Shown: piece by piece, positions 3,793 through 62,526 of the stretch
How positions within the stretch are numbered: position 1 is the first letter of the stretch
How the letters are laid out: every line of letters begins with the position of its first letter
Assembly: GCF_003704095.1 (NCBI RefSeq)
Contig: NW_020846117.1
Coordinates: 1-62,526 of the forward strand
DNA: 62,526 nucleotides
Source: Pocillopora damicornis
Taxonomy: Eukaryota
Direction of reading: 5' to 3'
The notes under the pieces: model-generated
Databases searched by the model: none
What the model saw: the letters and a program-made list of their open reading frames with translations, nothing else
Told to the model about the DNA's origin: nothing
Position numbers and translations under genes: made by a program

Positions 3793-6205
3793 TCAAGTAA
3801 TCAATGGAGCATTGTCCACGGTATCATCATCATCACCGTCACTGTCCTCCCCAACTTGAACCCCCTCGTTGGAAACAACACGCACATGTGCAGCGCCTGG
3901 AGACCTGAGTCTAAACAGAAAAACGTTACTTAAAATTCATTCACTTTTTCTTGCTGTTTTCACTTGATTCTCACTGAATCACACGCCACACTCAGTATGA
4001 GGCTTTAACTCCCATGAGTGACCACCACTGAATTTCTCCCTACAATATCCATACAATTTATAGCAAACAGGTGATGAGAATAGAGAGAAATATCAATTAA
4101 GGATTAACAGTTGATCCAGTCACAAATTCTCAGAACTAAAATCATAAGAACTGTACAGTAGTCAGTAAGGAGAATTGCTAATAAGATCTTGGGAGTGAAA
4201 GTGTTAAGGGACCAGTCAATATTTATCATCGGGAGGGGGGGCGATGAGGTCAGAGGATTATGGCTATGTCACAATAAAATCTACCTGATCCCCCACTGAC
4301 GCTCTGTGTTATCCTAGTGATCCCCCGTTATTGGTAGTTACCTATTGATCCCCCCTTTGTCCTCGCTGAGAACCATGTGATCCCCCCGGAAAAATCCTCA
4401 GACTACCCCTCCCCCCATTGCCAAACCGGTGTCTCACCTTGAAAATGAAAATGGAATATTAACACGTCTCTCCATCCATATAAACCCATAATATTCATTT
4501 TGTCGATTTGTTTCGTCCAACGTCTGACACATGTTTGAGTTGAGAGTCTCTGGAAGCCAAAGTATCACTAGGCCAGCGGTTAAAGCTAATGCTCCAAAGA
4601 CAACCATCGGAAAAATAACACTGAGTCCGGGTAACTGCGACTGCGAGATGGAAAAAAATTACACGTTTAAAATACACTTTGATGCAAATGACTTAAAATT
4701 CAATCATCTACAGATTCATGGTAGGAACGTGGTGAGTCCGTTTTTTCGATCCAGCCTTCATTCTCTGGACTTTGTCAGTGTATCATTGTAATTTTTACCA
4801 TTGATATTCAGCTCCCCAACGTGGTCCATAAGCACATATTACTTACCAGCATAACAATATAGGAGGCCAAAATAAAACCAAGGCGAGCAATAGTTGAACA
4901 AGTCCCAACAGCAAGGTTCCTATTGAGAGTAATTCACACAGGAAAGATATGCCGGATGCTATTTTGATATTTAAAACAGCGGACAGGGCAGGGAACAAGG
5001 TAGAACATAAATCTTAACCAACTTAATCAAGCAACAGAATGCACATTGCTGAAACAAAAAGAAACAATGTGTTGTGCATAACTACCGAACATTTAAACAC
5101 AAACACATACATAACGTTAATTACTTGTGCAAAAATGAGAAAGGAGAAAGGAGCGAATGCAAACTGCTAACGTGACAATCAAGAAAATATCAGGGTGAGA
5201 GTAAGAATAGATCCATTTGCGCTAATGCACCAACCTAACTAAACACAAACACACAGAAACAACTGCAATGAAGAGAGCAACATAACATAGCTTCCATGAA
5301 CCAAATAAACTGAATTGGATTTCACTCGATCACTAAGCATCTCATCAGAATAAGAGAATCAGTCTTTTTTTGTCTCACCTAATGGAAGTAGGGTACAGTT
5401 CACTGCTATACAGATATAAGATTGAAAATGACATCGTAACAAAGCCGCGTCCAATAAAAGCGAGAATTCTGATGAATCGTTCTTCGTCTGTAAAAATTTA
5501 ATTATTACAAAATGATAAATTTCTACTGAAACTCACATCACTTTCATTCCTCAATATCTTTAACTTCACCCCCTGTAACCGTCTCCGAGACGAAATCTTA
5601 CTCCTCCCCAATCCCCTCTCTGACATAACCCCTCTCACACCATAAAATCACCATATGATGTATCATTCGTCCCAACCATTAGATGTGTATCAAGGCAGGG
5701 TCGAAAGCGTACAATATTTCTTACATATAGAAGTAAAGAAAGTTAACCCTTTCACCCCTAACAGTGATTTACAGCTAATTTCTCCTTACAGAATCACTAC
5801 TGAATCACATATTAAGGTCATGAGAATAAAAGAAATCATCGCCTTTAGAAGCCTTTGATTGTTAAATAAATTCTCCTTGTCAGTGTGATAGGAAATGTGT
5901 AGAGAACAGTATGAAGAATACACGCACTGATGTTGAGGTGTTAACTAAGATGGATACTTCATTACACAATTAACTACTCTGTTAACTACTATGGAATAGT
6001 CACGTGACGCGAAATGGCTTTAACCAATAACAAAGCTACTTCAAAAGTAGCAAGTAAAAAGAGGTCGAGAATGCTATGACGTTGCGAACTGGAAATCAAA
6101 TTCAGTCAATAAGTTAGAAGCATACCTTTAGGAACAATAAGAACAAGAAGACACGCAACTCCACCGATGATCATGAAGACACAAAAAGGCACACGACGGC
6201 CAAAT
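3793..6205 (-). CDS. SLC22-family (organic cation/anion, MFS) transporter, paralogue A; 3' exons only
   Basis: Exons 6205-6126 (FGRRVPFC…), 5487-5379 (…YSSELYPTSIR), 4919-4847 (NLAVGTCSTIAR), 4640-4438 (…WLPETL…) and 3910-3793 (stop TGA). All are GT-AG and in frame, with intron positions matching paralogue C. The 5' exons are not present. Confidence 0.9.
4003..4207. mobile_element. ~200-bp MITE-like family with ttaaccct(t)…(a)agggttaa termini
   Basis: Shared core atttctcc(c/t)tacaatatc…gtgatgagaata…aaattctc…gatcttgggagtgaaa. Related copies at ~5743-5945, 37123-37330, 52690-52890, 52890-53090, 56015-56220, 58272-58480 and 62220-62318. Confidence 0.75.
5743..5945. mobile_element. MITE-like element (ttaaccct family)
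   Basis: Runs ttaaccctttcacccct…tgttgaggtgttaa. Closely similar to 52890-53090. Confidence 0.7.
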
Positions 6206-53090: not shown

Positions 53091-54352
53091 ATGGTTTTTC
53101 ACAGGGCTTGTAAAGGTTTGAATGAAATTTGCTAGAAACAAGCCAATGTGGGAACATAGCAAAATCCAAGAATGTTTCTTTAAATGATTCTAGTCATTAC
53201 CGTTGAGTGTAAACATGGGTTACACATTGCAATAAAATAGGTCTGTTTTGAAAAAACCATTATCAGCTATATTTGAAACCGCTCCTTTCAACAAAGAACA
53301 AAAATATTTTTACATTTTGTCAAACCTGTATTAGTTCATTTTAATCTTTTTTTTTTAATTTTTCATAAAAATTAGCCAATAACAAAAACAGTGTAATACC
53401 AAAGAAGGGTATTCTTGAAACCTTAAAATACTGGTCTCCAGTACAATTTTGTTTGAAATAACTGCTATGGTTTATTCAGTAACATCAATGCTGTAATGAC
53501 TCATCCTTTTGCAAATATATGATCAATTTATATATTGAATGTTGCTCAATAAATCCTCATGTAACTTTCCAATTATGATGTTCCCCAGATTAGAAGATGG
53601 GTAGATAATAATGATGTCCTTATATGTAAAATAATTTGTAAAAAAGTTAGGATTTTAATTAAGGAGATGAGTGTAAGGAGAGAGTGTAAGAAAAGTAAAG
53701 TTGAGATAGAGGTCATGAAAACTGAATCCTGTAAATAACATTTATGGATTGTTGACATTTCAGTACTGAATTATTTGTATTTGCCACAAATATTTAAGAA
53801 ACTTCTGTAATAAATTTCTATGATATTTTATACACTTTTCTCTGAGTTGCATTGAGTAAGTTTGAGTCTGTACTACAGGCAAGTTGTCTATATGTGACAG
53901 TGCAAAATTTTGTCATCTTTTGGTTAAGGAGTTACAGGTATCTTATGCATTCCAAAGATCTTTGAAAGGTGTCCATAATGGTTGTAGGTGTTACATCTTA
54001 CAGTGAGAAAGGGAGGGTGAAGGGCAAAGTGTGTTCAAAAATGAAAATGGTTTCCAAGCAAAGTCTTTTTTTTAATTGGTAAACTATCACTACATCATCT
54101 TTGAACTTGATTATTACATCCAAATTTTCAGTCAAAAACCAATACCTTTACCAGCCTCAAGTTTCTAGAACAACAGACTTCTCATGGTGACAACATTTTG
54201 TCCATCAAAAACCACAAAATTATCACTTACAAGAGCTCAGACAATGGTTGTTAGTGACATTGGTGAATTTCTGGACAACTATACACCATGTTAAACCCAA
54301 TACAGCAATTAATAACATTCATGCTGTAGGATAAAGCTTGATAACTGAAAAT

Positions 54353-57300
54353 CTACAGCTTGGCTGAGGGGTTGTCAAGAAGTTCATATGCTGGCAATGT
54401 CAAAAACTCTTCAAACTCTTCAGAGAGTACCAACTTATCCAAAAGGTGAGATGCCTGTGCCAAACGGCTTTTGGATGGACCTCCAAGTTTCTCAAGCTCT
54501 TCTTTGTGCAAAGTTTTGTAAAACTCTGGGGTGAGGGGGCGTCCATCCTCAAGTCGCACACCATGACGCAACCATTGCCATAGTTGTGCTCGTGAAATTT
54601 CTGCGGTGGCTGCATCTTCCATCAAATTGTGTATGGCAACAGCTCCAATTCCCTGTTAAAGGAAAGATAGAAATGAGCCCTACTAACAACAAGACTTTCT
54701 GGATAGCACTTAATTTGAACAGTCATACATAGAAGGTGATTGTTTAGAATACATATTCTTGTGACCTTTATGTTTGAATCAGGAGTGATATTGTTAGGAG
54801 AAATTAGATGACAGTCACTTTAAGGGGTTAAAAGGGTTATGGTTTCTTTTATGTCAGTGCTGATTCATCTCAAGAGTTGTTCAAATTGTACTTTTTAAAT
54901 GCAAAAAGTGAAAATTATAGATCAATAAAGATACCAGTAAATTTGTGCTTATGTACAGTTAGCTGAATGGGTTTTGAAGAAAAAGAAGTATATAAAGGAT
55001 ATGGGACTGTCAAAGAATCCAAAAAAGAGAAACAACAAACATTACCGACAGCCAGCTGCTCAGATACTGAAGAGCAACACCAATATTAACTCGCACTCCT
55101 TCCTCAGTGATCTTTCCCCCTGGCACAGAAACTGACAAGATCTCTTCAACCTTGACATTTACTTCCTCTCGAAGGCGATGTTTTTGATGGGAGGCACCAT
55201 GCAAGCCCTACAAACAAAAAAAAATTTGCTATAAAGTTGAGTGTCAAAGAATGGACAAACTACCTAGGCATGGAAGCATTTAGTGCTGGAGATTATATTT
55301 TTGAAAGGAAATTCAAAATAAAATATTGTGAACACTTTTTACAGCCTGAGCAGAGCTCAAAGTTTTTTAGATGATCACTACTCTTTTGCCAACTTTTAAG
55401 ACTTGATACATCTCTGGGAAATAATCTTGTCGACTAGCTCACAAAAAGCTGCACTAATTAAGTCCTATGTATTGTTTGTCTGATGATGCTTTTGGTTCTG
55501 ATGTGGATGATGATGTTTCAAGTGCATAATGATAGTCCTCTTTAAGCAATGAGGTTAATGGGTCAAGTGTCACCTTTTGAATCAATATGCTCTGGTGTGA
55601 TTGAACCATCTCGATGACCAGTTCCCTCATACAGAAAGCTTGCAGGTAAATAAATAGTTCTCACTTAAACTTAGGAGATTTCAAATTTTCCAGCTATAAA
55701 ACAAAACTCCAAATCAATTCCCACCTTCATAAAGATCCCCTTTGCAAAAGGCACAAGGTCAGGATGTGCAACCCAGGTGCCATCAAATCCATCAGCCACT
55801 TCCCGTTCCTTATCCTGACGGACCTTTTCAAATGCCATCTTATTGACATTTTCATCTCTTCTACTTGGAATAAAAGCTGCCATTCCACCCATGGCATGAG
55901 CTCCACGCTGATGGCACACCTGAACAAGACGTTCTGTGTATGCTCGCATGAATGGTACTGTCATTGATATCTGCAAATCAAAAACAATTGTGCATCTACT
56001 TGCTAGACTTAAAGCTTTACCATTCAACTCTCATGAATGACCAAGAAAAAATATCTCCTTACAATATCAATGCAACATTAACCAGACAAGTGATGAGAAT
56101 AAAGAAAAATATTATTTGGGGATTATCAGTTGATCCAATACCAATATCTGAACTAACATCATAAGAATTGTACCACAGACAGCAAGGAGAAGTAATGATG
56201 AGATCTTGAATGAAAGGGCTAATTACCTCTTGTAAGAACTTTGTGCAAAACTCTTAAAGAAATTATCTAAATCGCAATTCTGGTGAACCTCTAATACTTG
56301 TTGCAAGAAAGACGCAGGTGTAATTGACTTTTTGGGGAGTGGGGCGTGGGGGTGTTTGACCATGAGGACATCAACACTAACAGAAAGCTTAACAAGATGT
56401 AAACATCATAGTTTAAAATAATGACTAATTCTGATAGATGTAACTCAAACAGGGAAGAATGCAAATCAATCTAGAATAAAATCATCGTGACCTGAAATCT
56501 ACTCCCAACTGAGCATGTCTACATAATCAATTGAAGTAACACTTATTTACTGTTTTCTTAAAAAATAAAAACCCTTGCAAAACATATATTCCGTCATATC
56601 TACTGTATACAATGCAAGTTTGATTTTTTGTATGTTTTACCTGCTTACGATCTGGTAGTACACAATCAGGTTTTCTGGAGAATCTTTTAATTGCTGAAAA
56701 AATGTAGTCCCACCTTCCAGCATTCATGGCACAGCAGTGCTCTCTTATCTCATAAAGCATTTCTTCCATGTTCACTCCTGCTAGCAGAGTCTCTAACATA
56801 ACAGTTGCTCGTATGGTTCCTGGTGAACAGGAAAGAATATCATAGATTCAGTTAGTTGTCTGTGACACAAACTCTATCACTGAAAAATGACAGCAGTTAC
56901 ATTGCAGTTTGTACATTACTAAAATCTTTGAAAAAATTTTCCCCATTACATTAATAGCAATTCATAAAAAATCTTCCCTATCTTTCAAGACCTTTGATCC
57001 TCCTTGGCTGATTAATTCTTGATTGGTATTTCTCTGTCTAGCTGATCATAACCAAAACTCTCTGTACAATTCAACAAAGAAAAAAGTTGTCTACAATTAG
57101 GAGAGTTAGCTACCAGGTCTAACCTTGAGGAACTTTCATGTAATCCTGAGCAGATTTAAACACGTCATTCCAAAGCCTTGTTTCCAAATGAGTCTCCATT
57201 TTAGGAAGATAATAGTATGGAGCAGAGCCATTGGCAAGCCTAATGTGGACGTTATGAAAAAAGTAAAGTCCAAAATCTACCAGTGCACCACTCATGGGTT

Positions 57301-58603
57301 CTCCATCACAAAGGATGTGTTTCTCATCTAGGTGCAAGCCACGGGTGCGAACCAACAAGCAGGCTGTTTTGTCCTTCAAACGTCGCTCTGATCCTAACAG
57401 TTTGATAATAGAAATAAAAGCATCTGTTAATTGAGGCAGCAATAATGATTGTAGAAATGATTTAAGTGCATTGTTGTAGGCCTTTCTACTGGCCAAGTGC
57501 TGTGAAAAATGGTGATCATTTCCACTTTTCTCATGACCTTTTGATTTAAGGTTAATACCATAAGAAAAAATATGAAGCCAGTCACTCTAGGGGGTTAAGT
57601 AAATATGCAGTCAAACCTACCATCTGCATTGATGAAATTAATGGTCCCCCTGTTTGCATTTAAGAGGTTTATTTGTCCTTCAACAATATTTTTCCAGGAG
57701 GGAGTCAGTGAGTCTTCAAAATCAGCCATGTACATGTCTGCCCCACTGTTCAGGGCATTAATTACCATCTTACAGTCTGTTGGTCCTGTGATCTCCACAT
57801 GTCGCATCTGCAGATCATGTGGGACAGGTGCCACTTTCCAATCCTTCTCATGGTGAGCTTCAGGATATTTAATTTGCTTCCCACTGTTTATTTCTGCTTG
57901 GATTTCCTGTCGTTTTCTTAGCAGCTTTTTCCTCTGGTAGTTAAAACTGCGATGCAAATCAGCAAGAAACTCCAGGGCTTCATGTGATAGAATTTCACTG
58001 TATTCTGGCTTGATTTCACCAGTTATTTCAACACCTAGTTAGGGAGAGTAAAAAGAGATTAAATGATTTCAAAGGCAGAATTAAGTAAACTTTTTGCTCT
58101 TATCCTTGGATAAACATATGAAAAGTCCTCTTATAAAATTTTGTTGTTTGCCTCGGTTAACCCAATGCAAATATAATGCCAATAAAATGTACGTGTTGAT
58201 TCGCATAAATTTCTTTATCAAAATCAAGTCATAAACAAAGTTACTATTTTTAACTTCTATTTCCTTTTCTCTTAACCCTTTTACTCCCATAAGTGACCAA
58301 GAAAGAATTTCTCCTTACAGTATCAGTACAATATCAAGCAGACAAGTGATGAGAATAAAGAAAAATATCAATTAGGGATTATAAGTTGATCCAATACCAA
58401 ATTCTCCAAACTAACCTCACAAGAACTGAATGGCAGACAGTTAGAAGAATTACTGAGGAGATCTTGGGAGTTAATGGGTTAAACAGACAAACAACAATAA
58501 AACAAGCACCTATCCCTCAAACTCCCAAGATCCAATCAGTAAATATTTCAATATCCTCCTGTACTTTATATGACAAGATAAACTCACCCTTTGGACACCA
58601 CAT
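54353..58603 (-). CDS. Malate synthase (MSA/AceB type) with C-terminal PTS1 (-AKL)
   Basis: Exons 58603-58588, 58034-57621, 57393-57124, 56819-56641, 55970-55725, 55207-55046 and 54652-54353. Motifs: [76 protein letters not shown]. Confidence 0.97.
58272..58480. mobile_element. MITE-like element (ttaaccct family)
   Basis: Termini ttaacccttttactcccat … ttgggagttaatgggttaa. Near-copy of 56015-56220. Confidence 0.75.
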
Positions 58604-59095
58604 GGCTTTGTTTTCAGGAACCTATAATGAAAAAACACCATCAATCAGTCTTTAGAACAAGATGCTAAGCATAACCTTCTTCACAGGAAACTTTCCAACA
58701 AGTAAGCCATCCTCTGTTTATTTTCCTGTTCAAGAAGGAGAATTTCTAGAATAGCTGATTTCGAAAGAACAAATACCTAAGAAAACCTGTGATCTTCCAT
58801 GATTTGCAACCCTCAGCAAGAAAATGAATATCCCCTTCCCATGACATCCCTGAGAACTGGATTAGTGTTGTTTTAACAGTAGGGGAGGGTTTTAAGAGAC
58901 AAAGATCACAGCTGTGGAAGCTATTTATTATTCTTGTTATTGTTTAACAAAATCTGTTTATTAGAAACAACACAGATGCAATATAAATCAAAATGTTTGA
59001 GTCACGTCTGAATATATTTTAAATAGGTAAGGAGGTTGGGCAACCAATATCCCATACAAATCTTCTGAATGATCTCGCTGAAATAGCCTACTCAC

Positions 59096-59104
59096 GATTA
59101 CAGC
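59096..59104 (-). other. Candidate 9-nt microexon upstream of the malate synthase ATG
   Basis: The minus strand reads ctccttctctctttcag|GCTGTAATC|gtgagtag, a strong acceptor and donor 9 nt apart. Confidence 0.6.
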
Positions 59105-59357
59105 CTGAAAGAGAGAAGGAGACTGACAGAATTTGTCTCTGATCGACTTTGCCTTGCAATCAATGGGTCCAAAGTAACAATTAAAGAAAAAAGTAGTTTA
59201 CAATCAGGGGGGTACGTTATTACGTTTCGTGACGTTCAGTGACTTGAAGTTAAGTTTATTCAAGTAAATATAATAAGAACTTCCCTAAATTTCTCATTTT
59301 ACTCTGGAGAAGTGTATAAGTTGATTAATTTGTTAGAAGTTTGAGGTTCTATTTTAC

Positions 59358-60374
59358 CTGAATGAAATGCAAGTAAAATTACACAGCCGAATTAGATGAC
59401 ACGTGACAGTTTGTGACCCGTGGAACAAAGTGATAGAGGAGAAGTTTAAGATGCCTCCAATTGCGGAAAAATTTGAACTGTCTTTCATACTTACAGATGG
59501 ATTAAGAGTTCTGATAAGGAGAAAACTCGCGTTCAAACCCAGTTTTTGGCCGGACAGCACACTAATAGACTTTTCGTGAATAATGTCTCGCCCTCGTCTC
59601 GTCCTTAGATCCCATTAGCCTCAGCGCGCAGTTCAAGGTCCAACGTAGGGTGACCAGGGGGGCGGGGACAAAGGACATCAGGAGGTGTGCCGTGGGTTTT
59701 CCTAGTTATGTCAGGGGGTGGGGAAGGGGGTAAGTAACGCATAGTATTTTCATCTGGTATGTCGTTGTTTTCTTCGTTTAAGCCTGTAAAAATACTATAT
59801 ACTGGTACTATATGTAATATTCGTATTGATTTCTATCGATTTGCGAGTTGTTTCATATTTATAGTCCTTAGCAACACGAGAATTGCAATCCTTGGTAATA
59901 TTGCGTCAGATCCACGATAAACACAGTCACGAAATTGACTGCGATCATGGCAGCGAATCTTTGTCTTTTCCGATGTAGAATTGTCGTACGACTTGAAAAA
60001 GGTAACTCTGAACATAAATACAGAAGTGAAAGTATGAAAGATAAGTATGAAAGATAATTATGAAAGATAGGTATGAAAATACTTATGCAATTTACAATCC
60101 GTTTGGTCATGCCCACATGACTTTTTATCCTAGCGTGAGGCGTCTCTCATTATGCCTCCACCAATCAAATCCCCCAGTGAGACAATAGAGAAATTTTTTA
60201 CCAATGATGACGTCCGTAAGAAAATCGATCAAAGTTCATGTATAATTTTACTACAAAACGCTCGAAAAATTGGCCAAGATTCTCACTTAGTAAATTTACG
60301 GAGAAGCTTCTCTTGAAGTAAAGATATCCCAGTTGATCAGAGCCCAGTGTTAAGTTTCAACCGTCCTGCTCACA
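59358..60374. promoter_or_regulatory. Divergent promoter region between malate synthase and isocitrate lyase
   Basis: Minus-strand donor at 59358 (candidate malate synthase first exon); E-box cacgtg at 59400; GC box ggggcgggg at ~59660; CCAAT at 60161 and 60201; tgacgtc at 60208. Confidence 0.55.
60031..60081 (+). repeat. 13-bp tandem repeat (agtatgaaagata) x4
   Basis: Read directly from the sequence. Confidence 0.85.
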
Positions 60375-62526
60375 ATGTTTTCCAAACATCAGCGATTTCA
60401 AGGAATCAAGAGAAACTACAGCCCAGAGACTGTAGAAAAGCTTCGCGGTTCGTTCAAAATCGATTACTCTTTGTCGAAGCGAGGAGCCATGAAACTCTGG
60501 GAACTTTTGACTCGCGGAGGGAATTCTTACGTGAATGCTTTAGGAGCTCTCACGGGTAAGTAACCGTTCTGTACGAAGTTGTATGTGAAACAGAGCATTT
60601 TCAGCTAACTATTTTAATGTTAGACTTTGTCTCCACGTGCAAGACACTCTTTTCCCAAATATGGTAGATAAGGATTTTACAAATATGGTGAATATAATAC
60701 GTGGCGGGCAATTTGCCTGACACTTGGCTGCCAATCGTTTCTATATGAATCTACACTCCTAAAAGTTTCTTTTTGTCATATTAGTTAAAAGAGACGCAAA
60801 AAAAATTCGGATCTGACTTATTCTTGGCCACGTCAACCCAAGAAATTTTAATGACGTGGAAATGTGGCGGAACGCGAACTTTGGACTCGGACATGAATGA
60901 GCGATTGAGAATTGTGACTCGACAATTTTTCTATTCGATTTCCGTTTAAAAGTCAAGAACTAACGTAACACTTAAACCGCGAAACAATATTCCTTATGTA
61001 GCGTACAAAGATCGTCTTCATGGGAGGAGAATGACGCAGGACAATCTGGTTTCTACGTCGTATCAAGGCATCGACGTCAATTGATGTACCCGGAAAATTT
61101 TCTAACGCAAAATTTACTGACATTCGGATATCCCTCAAGAAAAACATTTCACCAGCGTTTTTTTTTTTTTTTAATCGAGATCAAAAAATAAAATGAGACA
61201 AACGGAGAATATGTTAGCATATTAGCATATAGTTTATTGTTTTTGCTTGAATAATACTTTCTTATCATGTATTTATTTTAAACCTGCTTGTGATTTCAGG
61301 TGGACAGGCCGTTCAGATGGCCAAGGCCGGTTTAAAAGCCATCTATCTAAGTGGATGGCAAGTTGCCGGTGATAACAATTTAGCTGGGCAGACTTATCCT
61401 GATCAAAGCCTGTATCCTGCAAACTCTGCTCCAAAACTTGTAGAGCGTATTAATAATGCGTTTATCAGGGCAGACCAGATTGCGCACATGGAAGGCACAG
61501 ACAAACACATTGACTACTTTTTGCCAATCGTTGCTGATTGTGAAGCTGGATTTGGAGGCCCATTGAATGCATTTGAACTCACCAAGTCCATGGTAATTTT
61601 CTGATTTGCATGTTAAGAACTTGTAGATAGTTTTTATCCATTGTTATTTCCAATTTTTCCTTTCTGTTTCAACACACTGCCCACTCAAGGCCTCTGTTGT
61701 GAAGTAAAACAAAAAAGTTGATAAGCTAGAGGTCAGAAGAAGGCTAACCTTGGAGCTATTGTTTATGTGACACACCACAGTCTAAGATAATTTGGAGATC
61801 ATGAGTATATAAATAATTTTTCTCTGTGTCAACTATTTTGACATGAAAATATTAATGTTGGGATAAAATGTAGGCTAGATTGGAGATGGATTAGATTGCT
61901 GTTTTGATAAAACAAAGGTTAATTTTGTTTCAACAAATGACCTCAAGGGTTTCACGAGGGCCCCAGGTACTAAATGGATAACACATTGTTGAAAAGGTCA
62001 GTGGTAGTTAAGGAAACTTTTTTTCAAACTGATGAAAAACCAAAATACATCAGGAGAAAAAAGCGAGAAATAGTTTTCCAAAATAAAGCCCTGAGAGACT
62101 TGCTGTTGCTATTTCAACATTTACTTCTCCCTCTGTTTCTGAAGGGAATGTAGGAAAATTTGGAAAGGGAATATAGCAATTCATCAGAGGTCACTTTAAG
62201 CTCTTCTCCAGGTACTTGTGAGTTGATTCAATATCAAATTCTCAGAACTAATGTCATAGGAAATGTATGATAAATAGTACAGAGAATTGCTGCTAAGATC
62301 TTGGGAGTGAAGGGCTTAAGTAGAATTTTGGTGTTAATGCTGATGTTTAATGGCTTCTTTCCTGACTAGATTGCAGCAGGTGCAGCTGCTGTTCATTTTG
62401 AAGACCAGTTGGCTTCGGAAAAGAAATGTGGTCACATGGGAGGAAAAGTGTTAGTACCCACACAACAATTTGTGAAGGTCCTCAATGCTGCACGATTGGC
62501 TGCTGATGTTCTGGATGTCCCTATTG
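60375..62526 (+). CDS. Isocitrate lyase (AceA-like), 5' part; continues past the window end
   Basis: Exons 60375-60555, 61300-61592 and 62370->62526. Motifs: [51 protein letters not shown] and the catalytic KKCGH (62421-62435). Confidence 0.97.

Follow-up and report, generated by a model that had tools for sequence, protein, structure and literature searches.

The malate synthase gene MS1 (minus strand) and the isocitrate lyase gene ICL1 (plus strand) were found head to head on a 62.5-kb contig of Pocillopora damicornis, which was taken whole as the window of analysis. The pair is probably an anthozoan locus transcribed outward from a region of less than 0.9 kb, in which two modules would be read by HNF4 and NF-Y, with products predicted to be peroxisomal. 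The head-to-head arrangement itself is already known, from a sea anemone in 2006 and a coral in 2014; what appears to be new is a conserved HNF4-type DR1 site with CCAAT boxes between the two genes. The ICL-MS pair is textbook-level in cnidarian genomics, and few examples show as clearly that animals can make metabolic genes of bacterial type entirely their own. Coral studies often invoke the glyoxylate cycle (in larvae, bleaching and disease) without knowing its control, and a short, precisely placed HNF4-type site with a CCAAT pair offers a testable idea for joint switching-on.

Gene models of MS1 and ICL1

Within the reach of the assembly both genes were intact; both are spliced and expressed. 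An earlier note on this DNA had described two separate spliced genes, MS on the minus and ICL on the plus strand, and these were confirmed by Pfam matches and by splice joints in RNA (Table 1), the latter taken from unstranded assembled contigs of four runs of four studies. The MS_N, MS_TIM-barrel and MS_C domains were matched by Pfam in order on the MS1 exons in one uninterrupted frame, the seven coding exons contained no stop codon, and six tblastn blocks corresponded to positions 14-534 of a 534-aa malate synthase. The MS1 product of 528 aa had the same length as the annotated P. verrucosa and Porites proteins. It was assigned to isoform A over G, the only solved matches of E3 being 3cux (528 aa) and 3cuz ("Malate synthase A", 532 aa); 3cux is the malate synthase A of Bacillus anthracis. 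Canonical RNA joints defined MS introns at 57394-57620, 58035-58587 and 58622-59494, and a minor alternative intron at 58622-58776. The donor of the MS first exon, formerly placed at 59358, was moved by the RNA joint to 59495, and the exon is non-coding. A second, unlinked MS gene (MS2) was present in the P. damicornis genome.

ICL1 was incomplete because the contig ends inside its third exon; residues 1-210 lay in the window and residues ~333-382 on the small contig C1105, followed by Ns. PF00463 matched exons 1-3, two of them above the cut-off in a whole-genome search, and the introns 60556-61299 and 61593-62369 were delimited by canonical RNA joints. The KKCGH catalytic loop, an established ICL signature, was found in the translation of exon 3. 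Exon 2 matched solved ICLs of 428-439 aa at E ~1e-39 and fungal-type structures at E 1e-9 to 1e-6. The P. verrucosa ortholog measured 426 aa, by the yardstick of ~425-430 aa for a prokaryote-type ICL without the ~100-aa insert of fungal and plant ICLs, and transcript contigs encoded it in full. The ICL protein was ~70-72% identical to Bacillaceae ICL. Both MS1 and ICL1 are under purifying selection; compared with P. verrucosa, 19 synonymous vs 5 non-synonymous codon differences were counted in 525 codons of MS, and 4 vs 1 in 209 codons of ICL.

Table 1. Features of the MS1-ICL1 locus, in positions of the window
Feature	Position	Strand	Evidence or remark
Guanylate_cyc_2 (PF09778) gene	50454..52547	+	neighbour of the pair; same left-hand neighbour in Nematostella, Actinia and P. 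verrucosa
MS1 E8 (last exon)	54353..54652	-	Pfam MS_C, E 4e-24; frame and acceptor read from sequence
MS1 stop codon	54353-54355	-	in E8
MS1 C-terminal -AKL, PTS1-type peroxisomal signal	54356-54364	-	in E8
MS1 E7	55046..55207	-	tblastn to full-length malate synthases; splice sites
MS1 E6 (TIM barrel)	55725..55970	-	Pfam PF01274, E 1e-33; splice sites
MS1 E5 (TIM barrel)	56641..56819	-	Pfam; splice sites
MS1 E4 (TIM barrel start)	57124..57393	-	RNA contigs 57123-57394, joint 57392/57620; donor site
MS1 E3 (MS_N domain)	57621..58034	-	RNA joints; best solved structures 3cux, 3cuz
MS1 E2, 34 nt, start codon 58603-58601	58588..58621	-	RNA joints on both sides; frame
MS1 E1, non-coding first exon, donor 59495	59495..~59565	-	joint 58619/59493 in three runs
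Distal DR1 AGTTCAAGGTCCA	59630..59642	+	one base off HNF4-specific CAAAGTCCA; orthologous site exact in other anthozoans
GC box GGGGCGGGG	59659..59667	+	within GC peak of 0.52-0.60 over 59550-59750; between X1 contig ends 59565/59717
Twin CCAAT boxes, 40 bp apart	60161..60205 (60161-60165, 60201-60205)	+	sequence comparison
Proximal DR1 CGATCAAAGTTCA (60226-60238), then TATA-like TATAAT (60241-60246)	60226..60246	+	sequence
ICL1 exon 1, coding part, ATG 60375	60375..60555	+	Pfam ICL; RNA joint 60554/61299
ICL1 exon 2	61300..61592	+	RNA contig 61299-61592 in 4/4 runs; prokaryote-type ICL structures, E ~1e-39
ICL1 exon 3, first 157 nt, catalytic KKCGH loop	62370..62526	+	cut by contig end; continues on C1105

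Start sites in the intergenic spacer

The two ATGs (58603 on the minus strand and 60375) lay 1,772 bp apart, in agreement with the ~1.8 kb given before. That no gene lies between them also held, as no inter-ATG ORF had a Pfam match; no Rfam match was found within 54000-62526. The first exons had been thought to be ~0.9-1 kb apart. RNA contigs bridged 59493-60557 unbroken in several runs, covering the whole spacer, and the first exons are therefore separated by at most ~150 bp or overlap. X1, the run of greatest depth, had an MS exon-1 contig ending at 59565 and an ICL exon-1 contig beginning at 59717; the contigs of other runs carried MS1 E1 to 60057 or beyond and ICL1 exon 1 upstream to 59493, where contigs L037 and L038 begin. 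Full ICL1 transcript contigs held 871 nt ahead of the ATG. The MS1 and ICL1 transcripts may overlap, or a long ICL1 leader may begin beside the MS1 promoter.

Bounded by the E1 donor (59495) on one side and by the ICL ATG (60375) on the other, the start sites lie less than 881 bp apart. Animal bidirectional promoters join head-to-head genes with start sites less than 1 kb apart and are often rich in CCAAT boxes and NF-Y sites. Judged from the exon bounds, the Pocillopora pair falls within this distance, and it resembles such promoters in its divergent genes, CCAAT boxes and GC-rich patch; unlike them, its spacer appears to consist of two modules, one with a TATA-like box, and carries RNA throughout, the start sites being deduced. 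Co-regulation of ICL1 and MS1 is plausible but unproven, and a single shared promoter is likewise unproven.

Conserved elements between the two genes

When k-mers were counted without bias in seven intergenic regions, TCAAAGTCCA came out as the top common 10-mer, present in 6/7 species; among 300 dinucleotide shuffles, six reached four species and none reached more. TCAAAGTCCA is an HNF4-type DR1 site, always on the ICL strand and beside twin CCAAT boxes; relative to the ICL ATG it occurs near -600 to -740 and again near -120 to -160. Across 10.9 kb of spacer, the ICL strand alone carried exact CAAAGTCCA, nine times; the ~190 kb of flanks had 11 copies with both strands summed. The exact sites of held-out Actinia were at -634 and -119, and those of Nematostella at -634 and -121. 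The spacer surrounding the conserved 10-mer did not align across deeply split lineages.

Two conserved promoter-like modules about 600 bp apart were delineated. The distal module, a GC-rich patch with a DR1, adjoins the MS1 first exon; the proximal module, CCAAT-CCAAT-DR1-TATA-like, stands about 100-230 bp before the ICL1 ATG and is the most conserved spacer architecture in hexacorals. Its DR1 and TATA-like block is likely the ICL1 core promoter. The CCAAT pair with 40-bp spacing was also found in Acropora, Porites, Nematostella, Xenia, Dendronephthya and Paramuricea, and with 28-bp spacing in Actinia. In held-out Paramuricea, no DR1 within one mismatch was present at the expected place, and the proximal DR1 was absent in octocorals and Exaiptasia.

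Exact CAAAGTCCA in DR1 context was absent from the P. damicornis spacer, which has CAAGGTCCA at 59634 and CAAAGTTCA at 60230 with one substitution each; it was exact at the orthologous positions of Acropora, Porites, Nematostella, Actinia, Exaiptasia, Xenia and Dendronephthya. The distal substitution falls at a position called tolerated (Fang et al. 2012, PMC3384313). The proximal Pocillopora DR1 reads as a generic AGTTCA half-site, which RXR or COUP-type receptors could bind.

HNF4 as a candidate regulator

CAAAGTCCA is the published HNF4-specific motif (H4-SBM), specified by Asp69 and Arg76 (Fang et al. 2012, PMC3384313). One HNF4 was found in the genome: among 16 DNA-binding domains of nuclear receptors recovered there, the one encoded at C3895:255560-255766 reads CDGCKGFFRRSVRKNH. 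Its best solved match was the human HNF4-alpha domain 3cbb (E 8e-39). The coral HNF4 appears to retain the Asp and Arg that specify CAAAGTCCA, the two residues being presumably those placed on the CDGCKGFFRRSVRKNH stretch by the human numbering. In C. elegans, an HNF4-like receptor, NHR-49, influences two genes of the glyoxylate pathway (PMC547972). Compared with known HNF4 target promoters (Fang et al. 2012, PMC3384313), the anthozoan locus is alike in carrying the exact motif at orthologous positions; it differs in that the Pocillopora sites are each one base off and the cnidarian sites are predicted from sequence.

Peroxisomal tails and the ICL2 paralog

A PTS1 was defined as the C-terminal tripeptide (S/A/C)-(K/R/H)-(L/M), and -AKL, such a tripeptide, ended both MS1 and the Xenia MS. 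ICL1 orthologs ended in SKL, AKL or HKL and, in two sea anemones, in SSL, a weaker form; Ns mask the ICL1 tail of P. damicornis in the assembly, and its PTS1 is predicted from these orthologs. The ICL1 and MS1 products would work in peroxisomes, converting acetyl-CoA from beta-oxidation into succinate and malate.

ICL2 is an unlinked paralog of a second ICL lineage, without a peroxisomal tail. Its basic N-terminal extension is possibly mitochondrial. The ICL2 promoter lacked the CCAAT pair and DR1 and was of CRE/TATA type instead; the vocabulary is therefore tied to the ICL1-MS1 locus and not to ICL genes generally.

Conservation of the pair and comparison with known systems

Adjacent MS(-)/ICL(+) genes were found in 10 assemblies across stony corals (A. 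digitifera, P. verrucosa, Porites evermanni), sea anemones and soft corals (N. vectensis in two assemblies, Xenia, Exaiptasia, Dendronephthya, Actinia, Paramuricea), plus one further eukaryote. Hexacorallia and Octocorallia alike have kept the pair in this orientation, and linkage, which the earlier note had proposed to check, was retained in every related genome examined. The interpretation in that note stands as far as two divergent spliced host genes with close start sites are concerned. The novelty of the arrangement does not: a 5'-5' ICL/MS pair was noted in Nematostella (Kondrashov et al. 2006, PMC1630690), and a head-to-head arrangement of ICL and MS1, in conserved synteny, was reported for A. 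digitifera (Shoguchi et al. 2014, PMC4083563). The Pocillopora locus is the ortholog of these, with no essential difference: the genes are orthologous and divergent, the ICL has three exons and is bacterial-type, a second MS gene likewise lies elsewhere in the genome, and the flanks are shared, Guanylate_cyc_2 on one side and, in P. verrucosa, YdjC and PIG-S on the other. Added to the known pair are the RNA-supported exon models, the non-coding MS first exon, the extension to Octocorallia, the conserved DR1/CCAAT elements, the PTS1 tails and the ICL2 lineage; one ICL gene was described in A. digitifera, and ICL2 was not reported (PMC4083563).

The nematode ICL-MS (C. elegans icl-1/gei-7; a 967-aa protein in Strongyloides), probably of bacterial ancestry, likewise combines the two activities in an animal for conversion of lipid to carbohydrate. 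It is one fused polypeptide from one strand, whereas Pocillopora has two genes on opposite strands. The nematode ICL was set apart from the anthozoan and Bacillaceae ICLs by a very long branch, consistent with the separate origin concluded in PMC1630690 and PMC4083563. In the bacterial aceB-aceA (ace) operon, the same two enzymes are adjacent, and the anthozoan ICL has its close Bacillaceae likeness; the operon genes are co-directional and co-transcribed, whereas the Pocillopora pair is divergent and monocistronic, with spliceosomal introns and with C-terminal PTS1 tails added, that of ICL1 being predicted.

Alternative explanations of the locus

Unrelated neighbours (YdjC, PIG-S, a Rieske/Pyr_redox gene and Guanylate_cyc_2) also keep their order from soft to stony corals, and conserved linkage is therefore not specific evidence for co-regulation. 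The adjacency could be a relic, either of a bacterial aceB-aceA type cluster or of chance juxtaposition, with independent promoters, separate regulation and slow decay of anthozoan microsynteny; the DR1 and CCAAT words would then be general vocabulary of metabolic-gene promoters without coupling. Besides the flanking genes, the separation of the two modules, the TATA-like box of the ICL one and discordant published ICL/MS expression contrasts agree with this, and an operon origin with one gene inverted was raised by Kondrashov et al. (PMC1630690). The same 10-mer at both modules, in one orientation and kept across deep splits amid unalignable spacer, argues against it, as does the unlinked ICL2 without the CCAAT pair and DR1; a relic was judged rather improbable, at roughly a one-in-five level of belief. 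One compact classical bidirectional promoter at ~59566-59716, comprising the DR1, GC box and GC peak, is a still less likely driver of both genes. It would start MS1 near 59565 and ICL1 near 59717 with a leader of ~660 nt, leaving the proximal CCAAT/DR1 block as an internal enhancer or minor alternative promoter. The X1 contig gap, with the DR1 and GC box in its middle, and the 871 nt preceding the ICL1 ATG suggest such a promoter; however, contig ends are graph break points and not RNA ends, the gap is spanned by contigs of other runs, several upstream ATGs would make a ~660-nt leader a poor template, and the block near the ICL1 ATG has a core-promoter layout.

The likeness to Bacillaceae ICL, and a short contig ending within ICL, could also suggest a symbiont, a bacterium or another contaminant as the source. 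This origin was refuted and its probability is negligible: GT-AG introns were confirmed by poly(A) RNA, the GC content of about 37-38% did not depart from that of the remaining window, the neighbours are animal genes (UNC-93, SH3, IF-2B, Guanylate_cyc_2), NCBI lists the ICL2 from this genome under P. damicornis, 12.2 kb were collinear at 96.5% identity with a 20-Mb P. verrucosa chromosome, and Nematostella, which to our knowledge has no dinoflagellate symbionts, has the same gene order. Origin from the animal host, on which the earlier note had made its claim depend, was thus established.

Under the preferred reading of two modules read by HNF4 and NF-Y, each module would be the core promoter of the nearer gene, the coral's single HNF4-type receptor would read both, and NF-Y would act on the CCAAT boxes. 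With HNF4 reading both modules, ICL1 and MS1 would therefore tend toward joint induction during lipid burning, yet could vary independently. We tentatively consider a broader and rather less than even possibility, that an HNF4-type receptor controls ICL1 and MS1, of bacterial ancestry, through DR1 sites predating the hexacoral/octocoral split, as a kept divergent peroxisomal unit that ICL2 left. If true, two genes that came from bacteria were brought under a regulator of lipid metabolism that is ancient in animals. In published contrasts, ICL was up 3.9-fold in symbiotic Aiptasia with MS unchanged, and MS was reported up without ICL in A. hyacinthus; paralogs may confound both. Published coral "ICL" and "MS" changes may mix genes (ICL1/ICL2, MS1/MS2) that differ in targeting and promoters. 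The exit of stony-coral ICL2, if true, would split glyoxylate metabolism between compartments and signals.

Conservation of the head-to-head MS/ICL pair in Anthozoa

The window locus is the Pocillopora ortholog of a known head-to-head pair, formed by the malate synthase gene MS1 and the isocitrate lyase gene ICL1. The earlier note observed the divergent arrangement correctly and the genes are real, but the arrangement, which it did not know to be described, had already been reported twice. In Nematostella, ICL and MS form a tandem pair on opposite strands, oriented 5'-5'; both contain introns, are represented by ESTs and group with bacteria (Kondrashov et al. 2006, PMC1630690). In A. digitifera, one ICL and two MS genes were found, with ICL/MS1 head to head and in synteny shared with Nematostella (Shoguchi et al. 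2014, PMC4083563). The adjacency and orientation proposed for comparison in related genomes were recovered in all listed assemblies: MS(-)/ICL(+) was present in stony corals (A. digitifera, P. verrucosa and Porites evermanni), sea anemones (N. vectensis in two assemblies, Exaiptasia and Actinia) and soft corals (Xenia, Dendronephthya and Paramuricea), and the annotated coding regions of the pair were mostly 1.0-2.4 kb apart. In Dendronephthya, an additional ICL-like gene of 327 aa was found just past the MS 3' end on the strand of the main ICL (locus L042, 3000-4694).

MS(-)/ICL(+) was also detected on ctg35536, a 1.59-Mb eukaryotic metagenome contig (ENA ERZ25067901, locus L043). Its ICL had three exons and an -SKL end, and fell within a nine-sequence clade sister to the anthozoan ICLs. 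Because ctg35536 carries the pair and its ICL clade is sister to that of the anthozoans, the pair may be older than Anthozoa. The neighbours Guanylate_cyc_2, YdjC, PIG-S and a Rieske/Pyr_redox gene were conserved as well. This can be read in two directions: it marks the locus as an old one, yet linkage alone is no proof of selected co-regulation.

Gene structure of MS1 and ICL1

Gene models were based on Pfam matches in the window and on assembled RNA contigs from four runs of four studies, placed on 57000-62526. MS_C, MS_TIM-barrel and MS_N were assigned to minus-strand ORFs at 54353-57957, and the ICL domain to plus-strand ORFs from 60375 rightward. RNA joints defined canonical introns at 57394-57620, 58035-58587 and 58622-59494 in MS1, with a minor alternative at 58622-58776, and at 60556-61299 and 61593-62369 in ICL1. 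Exons were searched singly, and the only local joins were the exon 2/3 translation for the MS start and the summed per-exon codon counts. MS1 comprised 528 codons, the length also annotated for its counterparts in P. verrucosa and Porites; among sequence representatives, MS exon 3 matched mainly ORF fragments of exon plus intron. The start codons were separated by 1,772 bp (58603 to 60375), and no Pfam or Rfam match was found between them, so that both the start-codon spacing and the gene-free stretch claimed previously were confirmed.

Features of the MS1-ICL1 locus (window coordinates)
Feature	Position	Strand	Evidence or remark
MS1 exon, last	54353-54652	-	frame, splice sites, tblastn to full-length malate synthases
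MS1 exon	55046-55207	-	frame, splice sites, tblastn to full-length malate synthases
MS1 exon	55725-55970	-	frame, splice sites, tblastn to full-length malate synthases
MS1 exon	56641-56819	-	frame, splice sites, tblastn to full-length malate synthases
MS1 exon	57124-57393	-	frame, splice sites, tblastn to full-length malate synthases
MS1 exon	57621-58034	-	frame, splice sites, tblastn to full-length malate synthases
MS1 exon 2, 34 nt, start codon at 58603	58588-58621	-	RNA joints and sequence
MS1 exon 1, non-coding	donor 59495	-	RNA joints and sequence
Distal DR1	59630-59642	+	AGTTCAAGGTCCA, one base from exact motif
Twin CCAAT boxes, 40 bp apart	60161, 60201		upstream of proximal DR1
Proximal DR1	60226-60238	+	CGATCAAAGTTCA, one base from exact motif
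ICL1 ATG	60375	+	Pfam, RNA joints, sequence

ICL1 stopped in the window at residue 210, which is the contig end. The N-rich 3.9-kb contig C1105 (3,915 bp) carried ICL1 residues ~333-382 at its start, followed by Ns. Since one database ORF, P0039, matched both the exon-3 piece of the window and the C1105 piece at 100%, the two pieces were assigned to one ICL1 exon (exon 3); P0039 served only as the link between contigs and the Ns were kept as such. Full ICL1 is probably missing from the annotated P. damicornis gene set, with the gene split between C1105 and C2752, the contig that the window covers in full (62,526 bp; one of 4,393 contigs in a 234-Mb assembly).

Host origin and enzyme type

A contaminant or symbiont source of the contig was considered and rejected, because the introns of MS1 and ICL1 were spliced in poly(A) RNA, the base composition of the pair was the same as that of the remaining window, UNC-93, SH3, IF-2B and Guanylate_cyc_2 genes lay on the same contig, and the final 12 kb of the window aligned with a 20-Mb P. 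verrucosa chromosome at 96.5% identity. Over 525 MS1 codons, P. damicornis and P. verrucosa showed 19 synonymous and 5 non-synonymous differences; over 209 ICL1 codons the counts were 4 synonymous and 1 non-synonymous, and no stops were found in either gene. The spliced introns, base composition, neighbour genes and synonymous excess without stops point to MS1 and ICL1 as working host genes. The second ICL match in the genome, on contig C2744, was likewise rejected as a haplotig or allele, as its resemblance to the window was confined to exons at ~77% nucleotide identity, which identified it as a paralog.

The KKCGH loop was present in ICL1 exon 3. Against solved structures, ICL1 exon 2 matched prokaryote-type ICL at ~1e-39 and fungal ICL at 1e-9 or weaker, and malate synthase A structures were the sole structure matches of MS1 exon 3. 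The C-terminal tail of MS1 was -AKL and those of ICL1 orthologs were SKL, AKL, HKL or SSL; given these tails, a peroxisomal location of the pair, as in plants and fungi, is most likely.

Transcripts in the MS1-ICL1 spacer

The MS1 donor lies at 59495 and the ICL1 ATG at 60375, which places the two start sites less than 881 bp apart. In X1, the deepest of the four RNA runs, the MS exon-1 contig reached 59565 and that of ICL exon 1 began at 59717; in the gap (59565-59717), GC content peaked at 0.52-0.60 and a GGGGCGGGG box was present. In another run, one contig connected the MS exon-2 junction with 59493-60057; a further contig from the runs other than X1 spanned 59531-60535, and two full ICL1 transcript contigs started precisely at 59493. 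Because the contigs carry no strand information and stop at break points of the assembly graph rather than at RNA ends, they do not fix the start sites, and the MS1 and ICL1 transcripts may overlap. An Acropora transcript contig began 459 nt upstream of the ATG, where no recognisable splice site was found. A long ICL1 leader (59717-60374), if real, would contain several upstream ATGs and short ORFs (e.g. 59759-59920 and 60152-60316), and translation would then depend on the start site used.

One X1 contig ran from MS exon 1 at 59565 into 30 letters that matched C2744:253078-253107 exactly and uniquely in the genome, ~4 kb upstream of the paralog ICL2. No canonical splice sites were found at the junction and the two regions had no shared homology. 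The junction may be a chimera, a colony-specific rearrangement or a trans event, and was treated as unexplained or chimeric.

Conserved DR1 and CCAAT elements

The spacers of seven species were compared by a strand-specific k-mer count, with Actinia and Paramuricea held out. In this unbiased count TCAAAGTCCA ranked top, being exact in 6 of 7 species, while 300 dinucleotide shuffles reached 4 species in 6 cases and never more. Exact CAAAGTCCA occurred at 9 sites in 10.9 kb of spacer, all on the ICL strand, versus 11 in ~190 kb of flanks with both strands combined. The sites occupied two positions relative to the ICL ATG, at about -600 to -740 and -120 to -160, and the core of DR1, the nuclear-receptor-type element, was the sole invariant block in the distal-region alignment. 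A TATA-like box follows the proximal DR1 in Pocillopora, and the order CCAAT-CCAAT-DR1-TATA-like was also found in Acropora, Porites and Nematostella; octocorals retained the CCAAT pair. The outcome in the two held-out species was mixed. Actinia had exact sites at -634 and -119 together with a CCAAT pair. Paramuricea had the CCAAT pair, but no DR1 was found at the corresponding position with up to one mismatch allowed. The DR1 and CCAAT elements of the spacer are new in this analysis. As other candidate shared elements, a CRE-like TGACGTC at 60208 was not conserved, and matches to ERRE, NRF1, canonical TATA and GC-box were not common across species.

The earlier note had placed both genes on a single 1-kb promoter. 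A description as two conserved promoter-like modules, lying within less than 0.9 kb and with a common vocabulary of DR1 and CCAAT, suits the region better. The HNF4-specific motif in the literature is CAAAGTCCA, for which Asp69 and Arg76 are the reading residues (PMC3384313). Among 16 nuclear-receptor DNA-binding domains found in the genome, one reads CDGCKGFFRRSVRKNH, and its best match was the human HNF4-alpha DBD (E 8e-39). In C. elegans, two glyoxylate-pathway genes are affected by the HNF4-like NHR-49 (PMC547972), and our literature search found no report tying HNF4 to cnidarian glyoxylate genes. Co-regulation of MS1 and ICL1 by HNF4 would be a reasonable and testable reading of these motifs, not a result. 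Strict coupling of the two genes is argued against, because published contrasts show ICL or MS changing alone.

Paralogs ICL2 and MS2

ICL2 (C2744:246497-249079, minus strand; locus L016, 498-3080) encodes 442 aa in three exons like ICL1, and no MS adjoined it. It had a basic N-terminal extension and a C-terminus without the peroxisomal tail PTS1, and may act in mitochondria or in the cytosol. In its promoter the CCAAT pair and DR1 were both absent, and a TATAAA box and a CRE in exact form (TGACGTCA) were present. Orthologs were observed in P. verrucosa, P. meandrina, Stylophora (two tandem copies), Oculina and Montipora. Located 2 kb downstream of ICL2, an ICL fragment (C2744:244126-244565, minus strand; residues ~267-417, with an internal stop) is probably the remnant of a tandem copy still intact in Stylophora. 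The second Stylophora copy (locus L024) retained GCCTCGTTT...TCAAAGTCCA ~250 bp before its ATG (10001), resembling the distal spacer module between ICL1 and MS1, which suggests that the original duplication took along part of this spacer.

In the ICL tree, anthozoan sequences formed one clade (support 99/98) with four groups, namely stony-coral ICL1, sea anemones, octocorals and stony-coral ICL2, for which the tree gives no firm branching order. Outward from the anthozoans came a further eukaryote clade and then Bacillaceae, with nematodes far off. MS2 (C2496:384701-391169, plus strand; loci L014/L017), a second malate synthase, was more divergent, with at least six small exons and no MS_C match found. 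Its presence agrees with the earlier report of two MS genes in Acropora.

A ~210-bp repeat family was also observed in the window (58270-58490, 4005-4207, 52685-52892, 56020-56225 and 62232-62324), with more copies on C2496 and no Rfam match. The copy in MS intron 2 reached an X1 contig depth of ~58,000, well above every exon, such depths being unfit to rank expression. The family is an abundant, transcribed, interspersed repeat.
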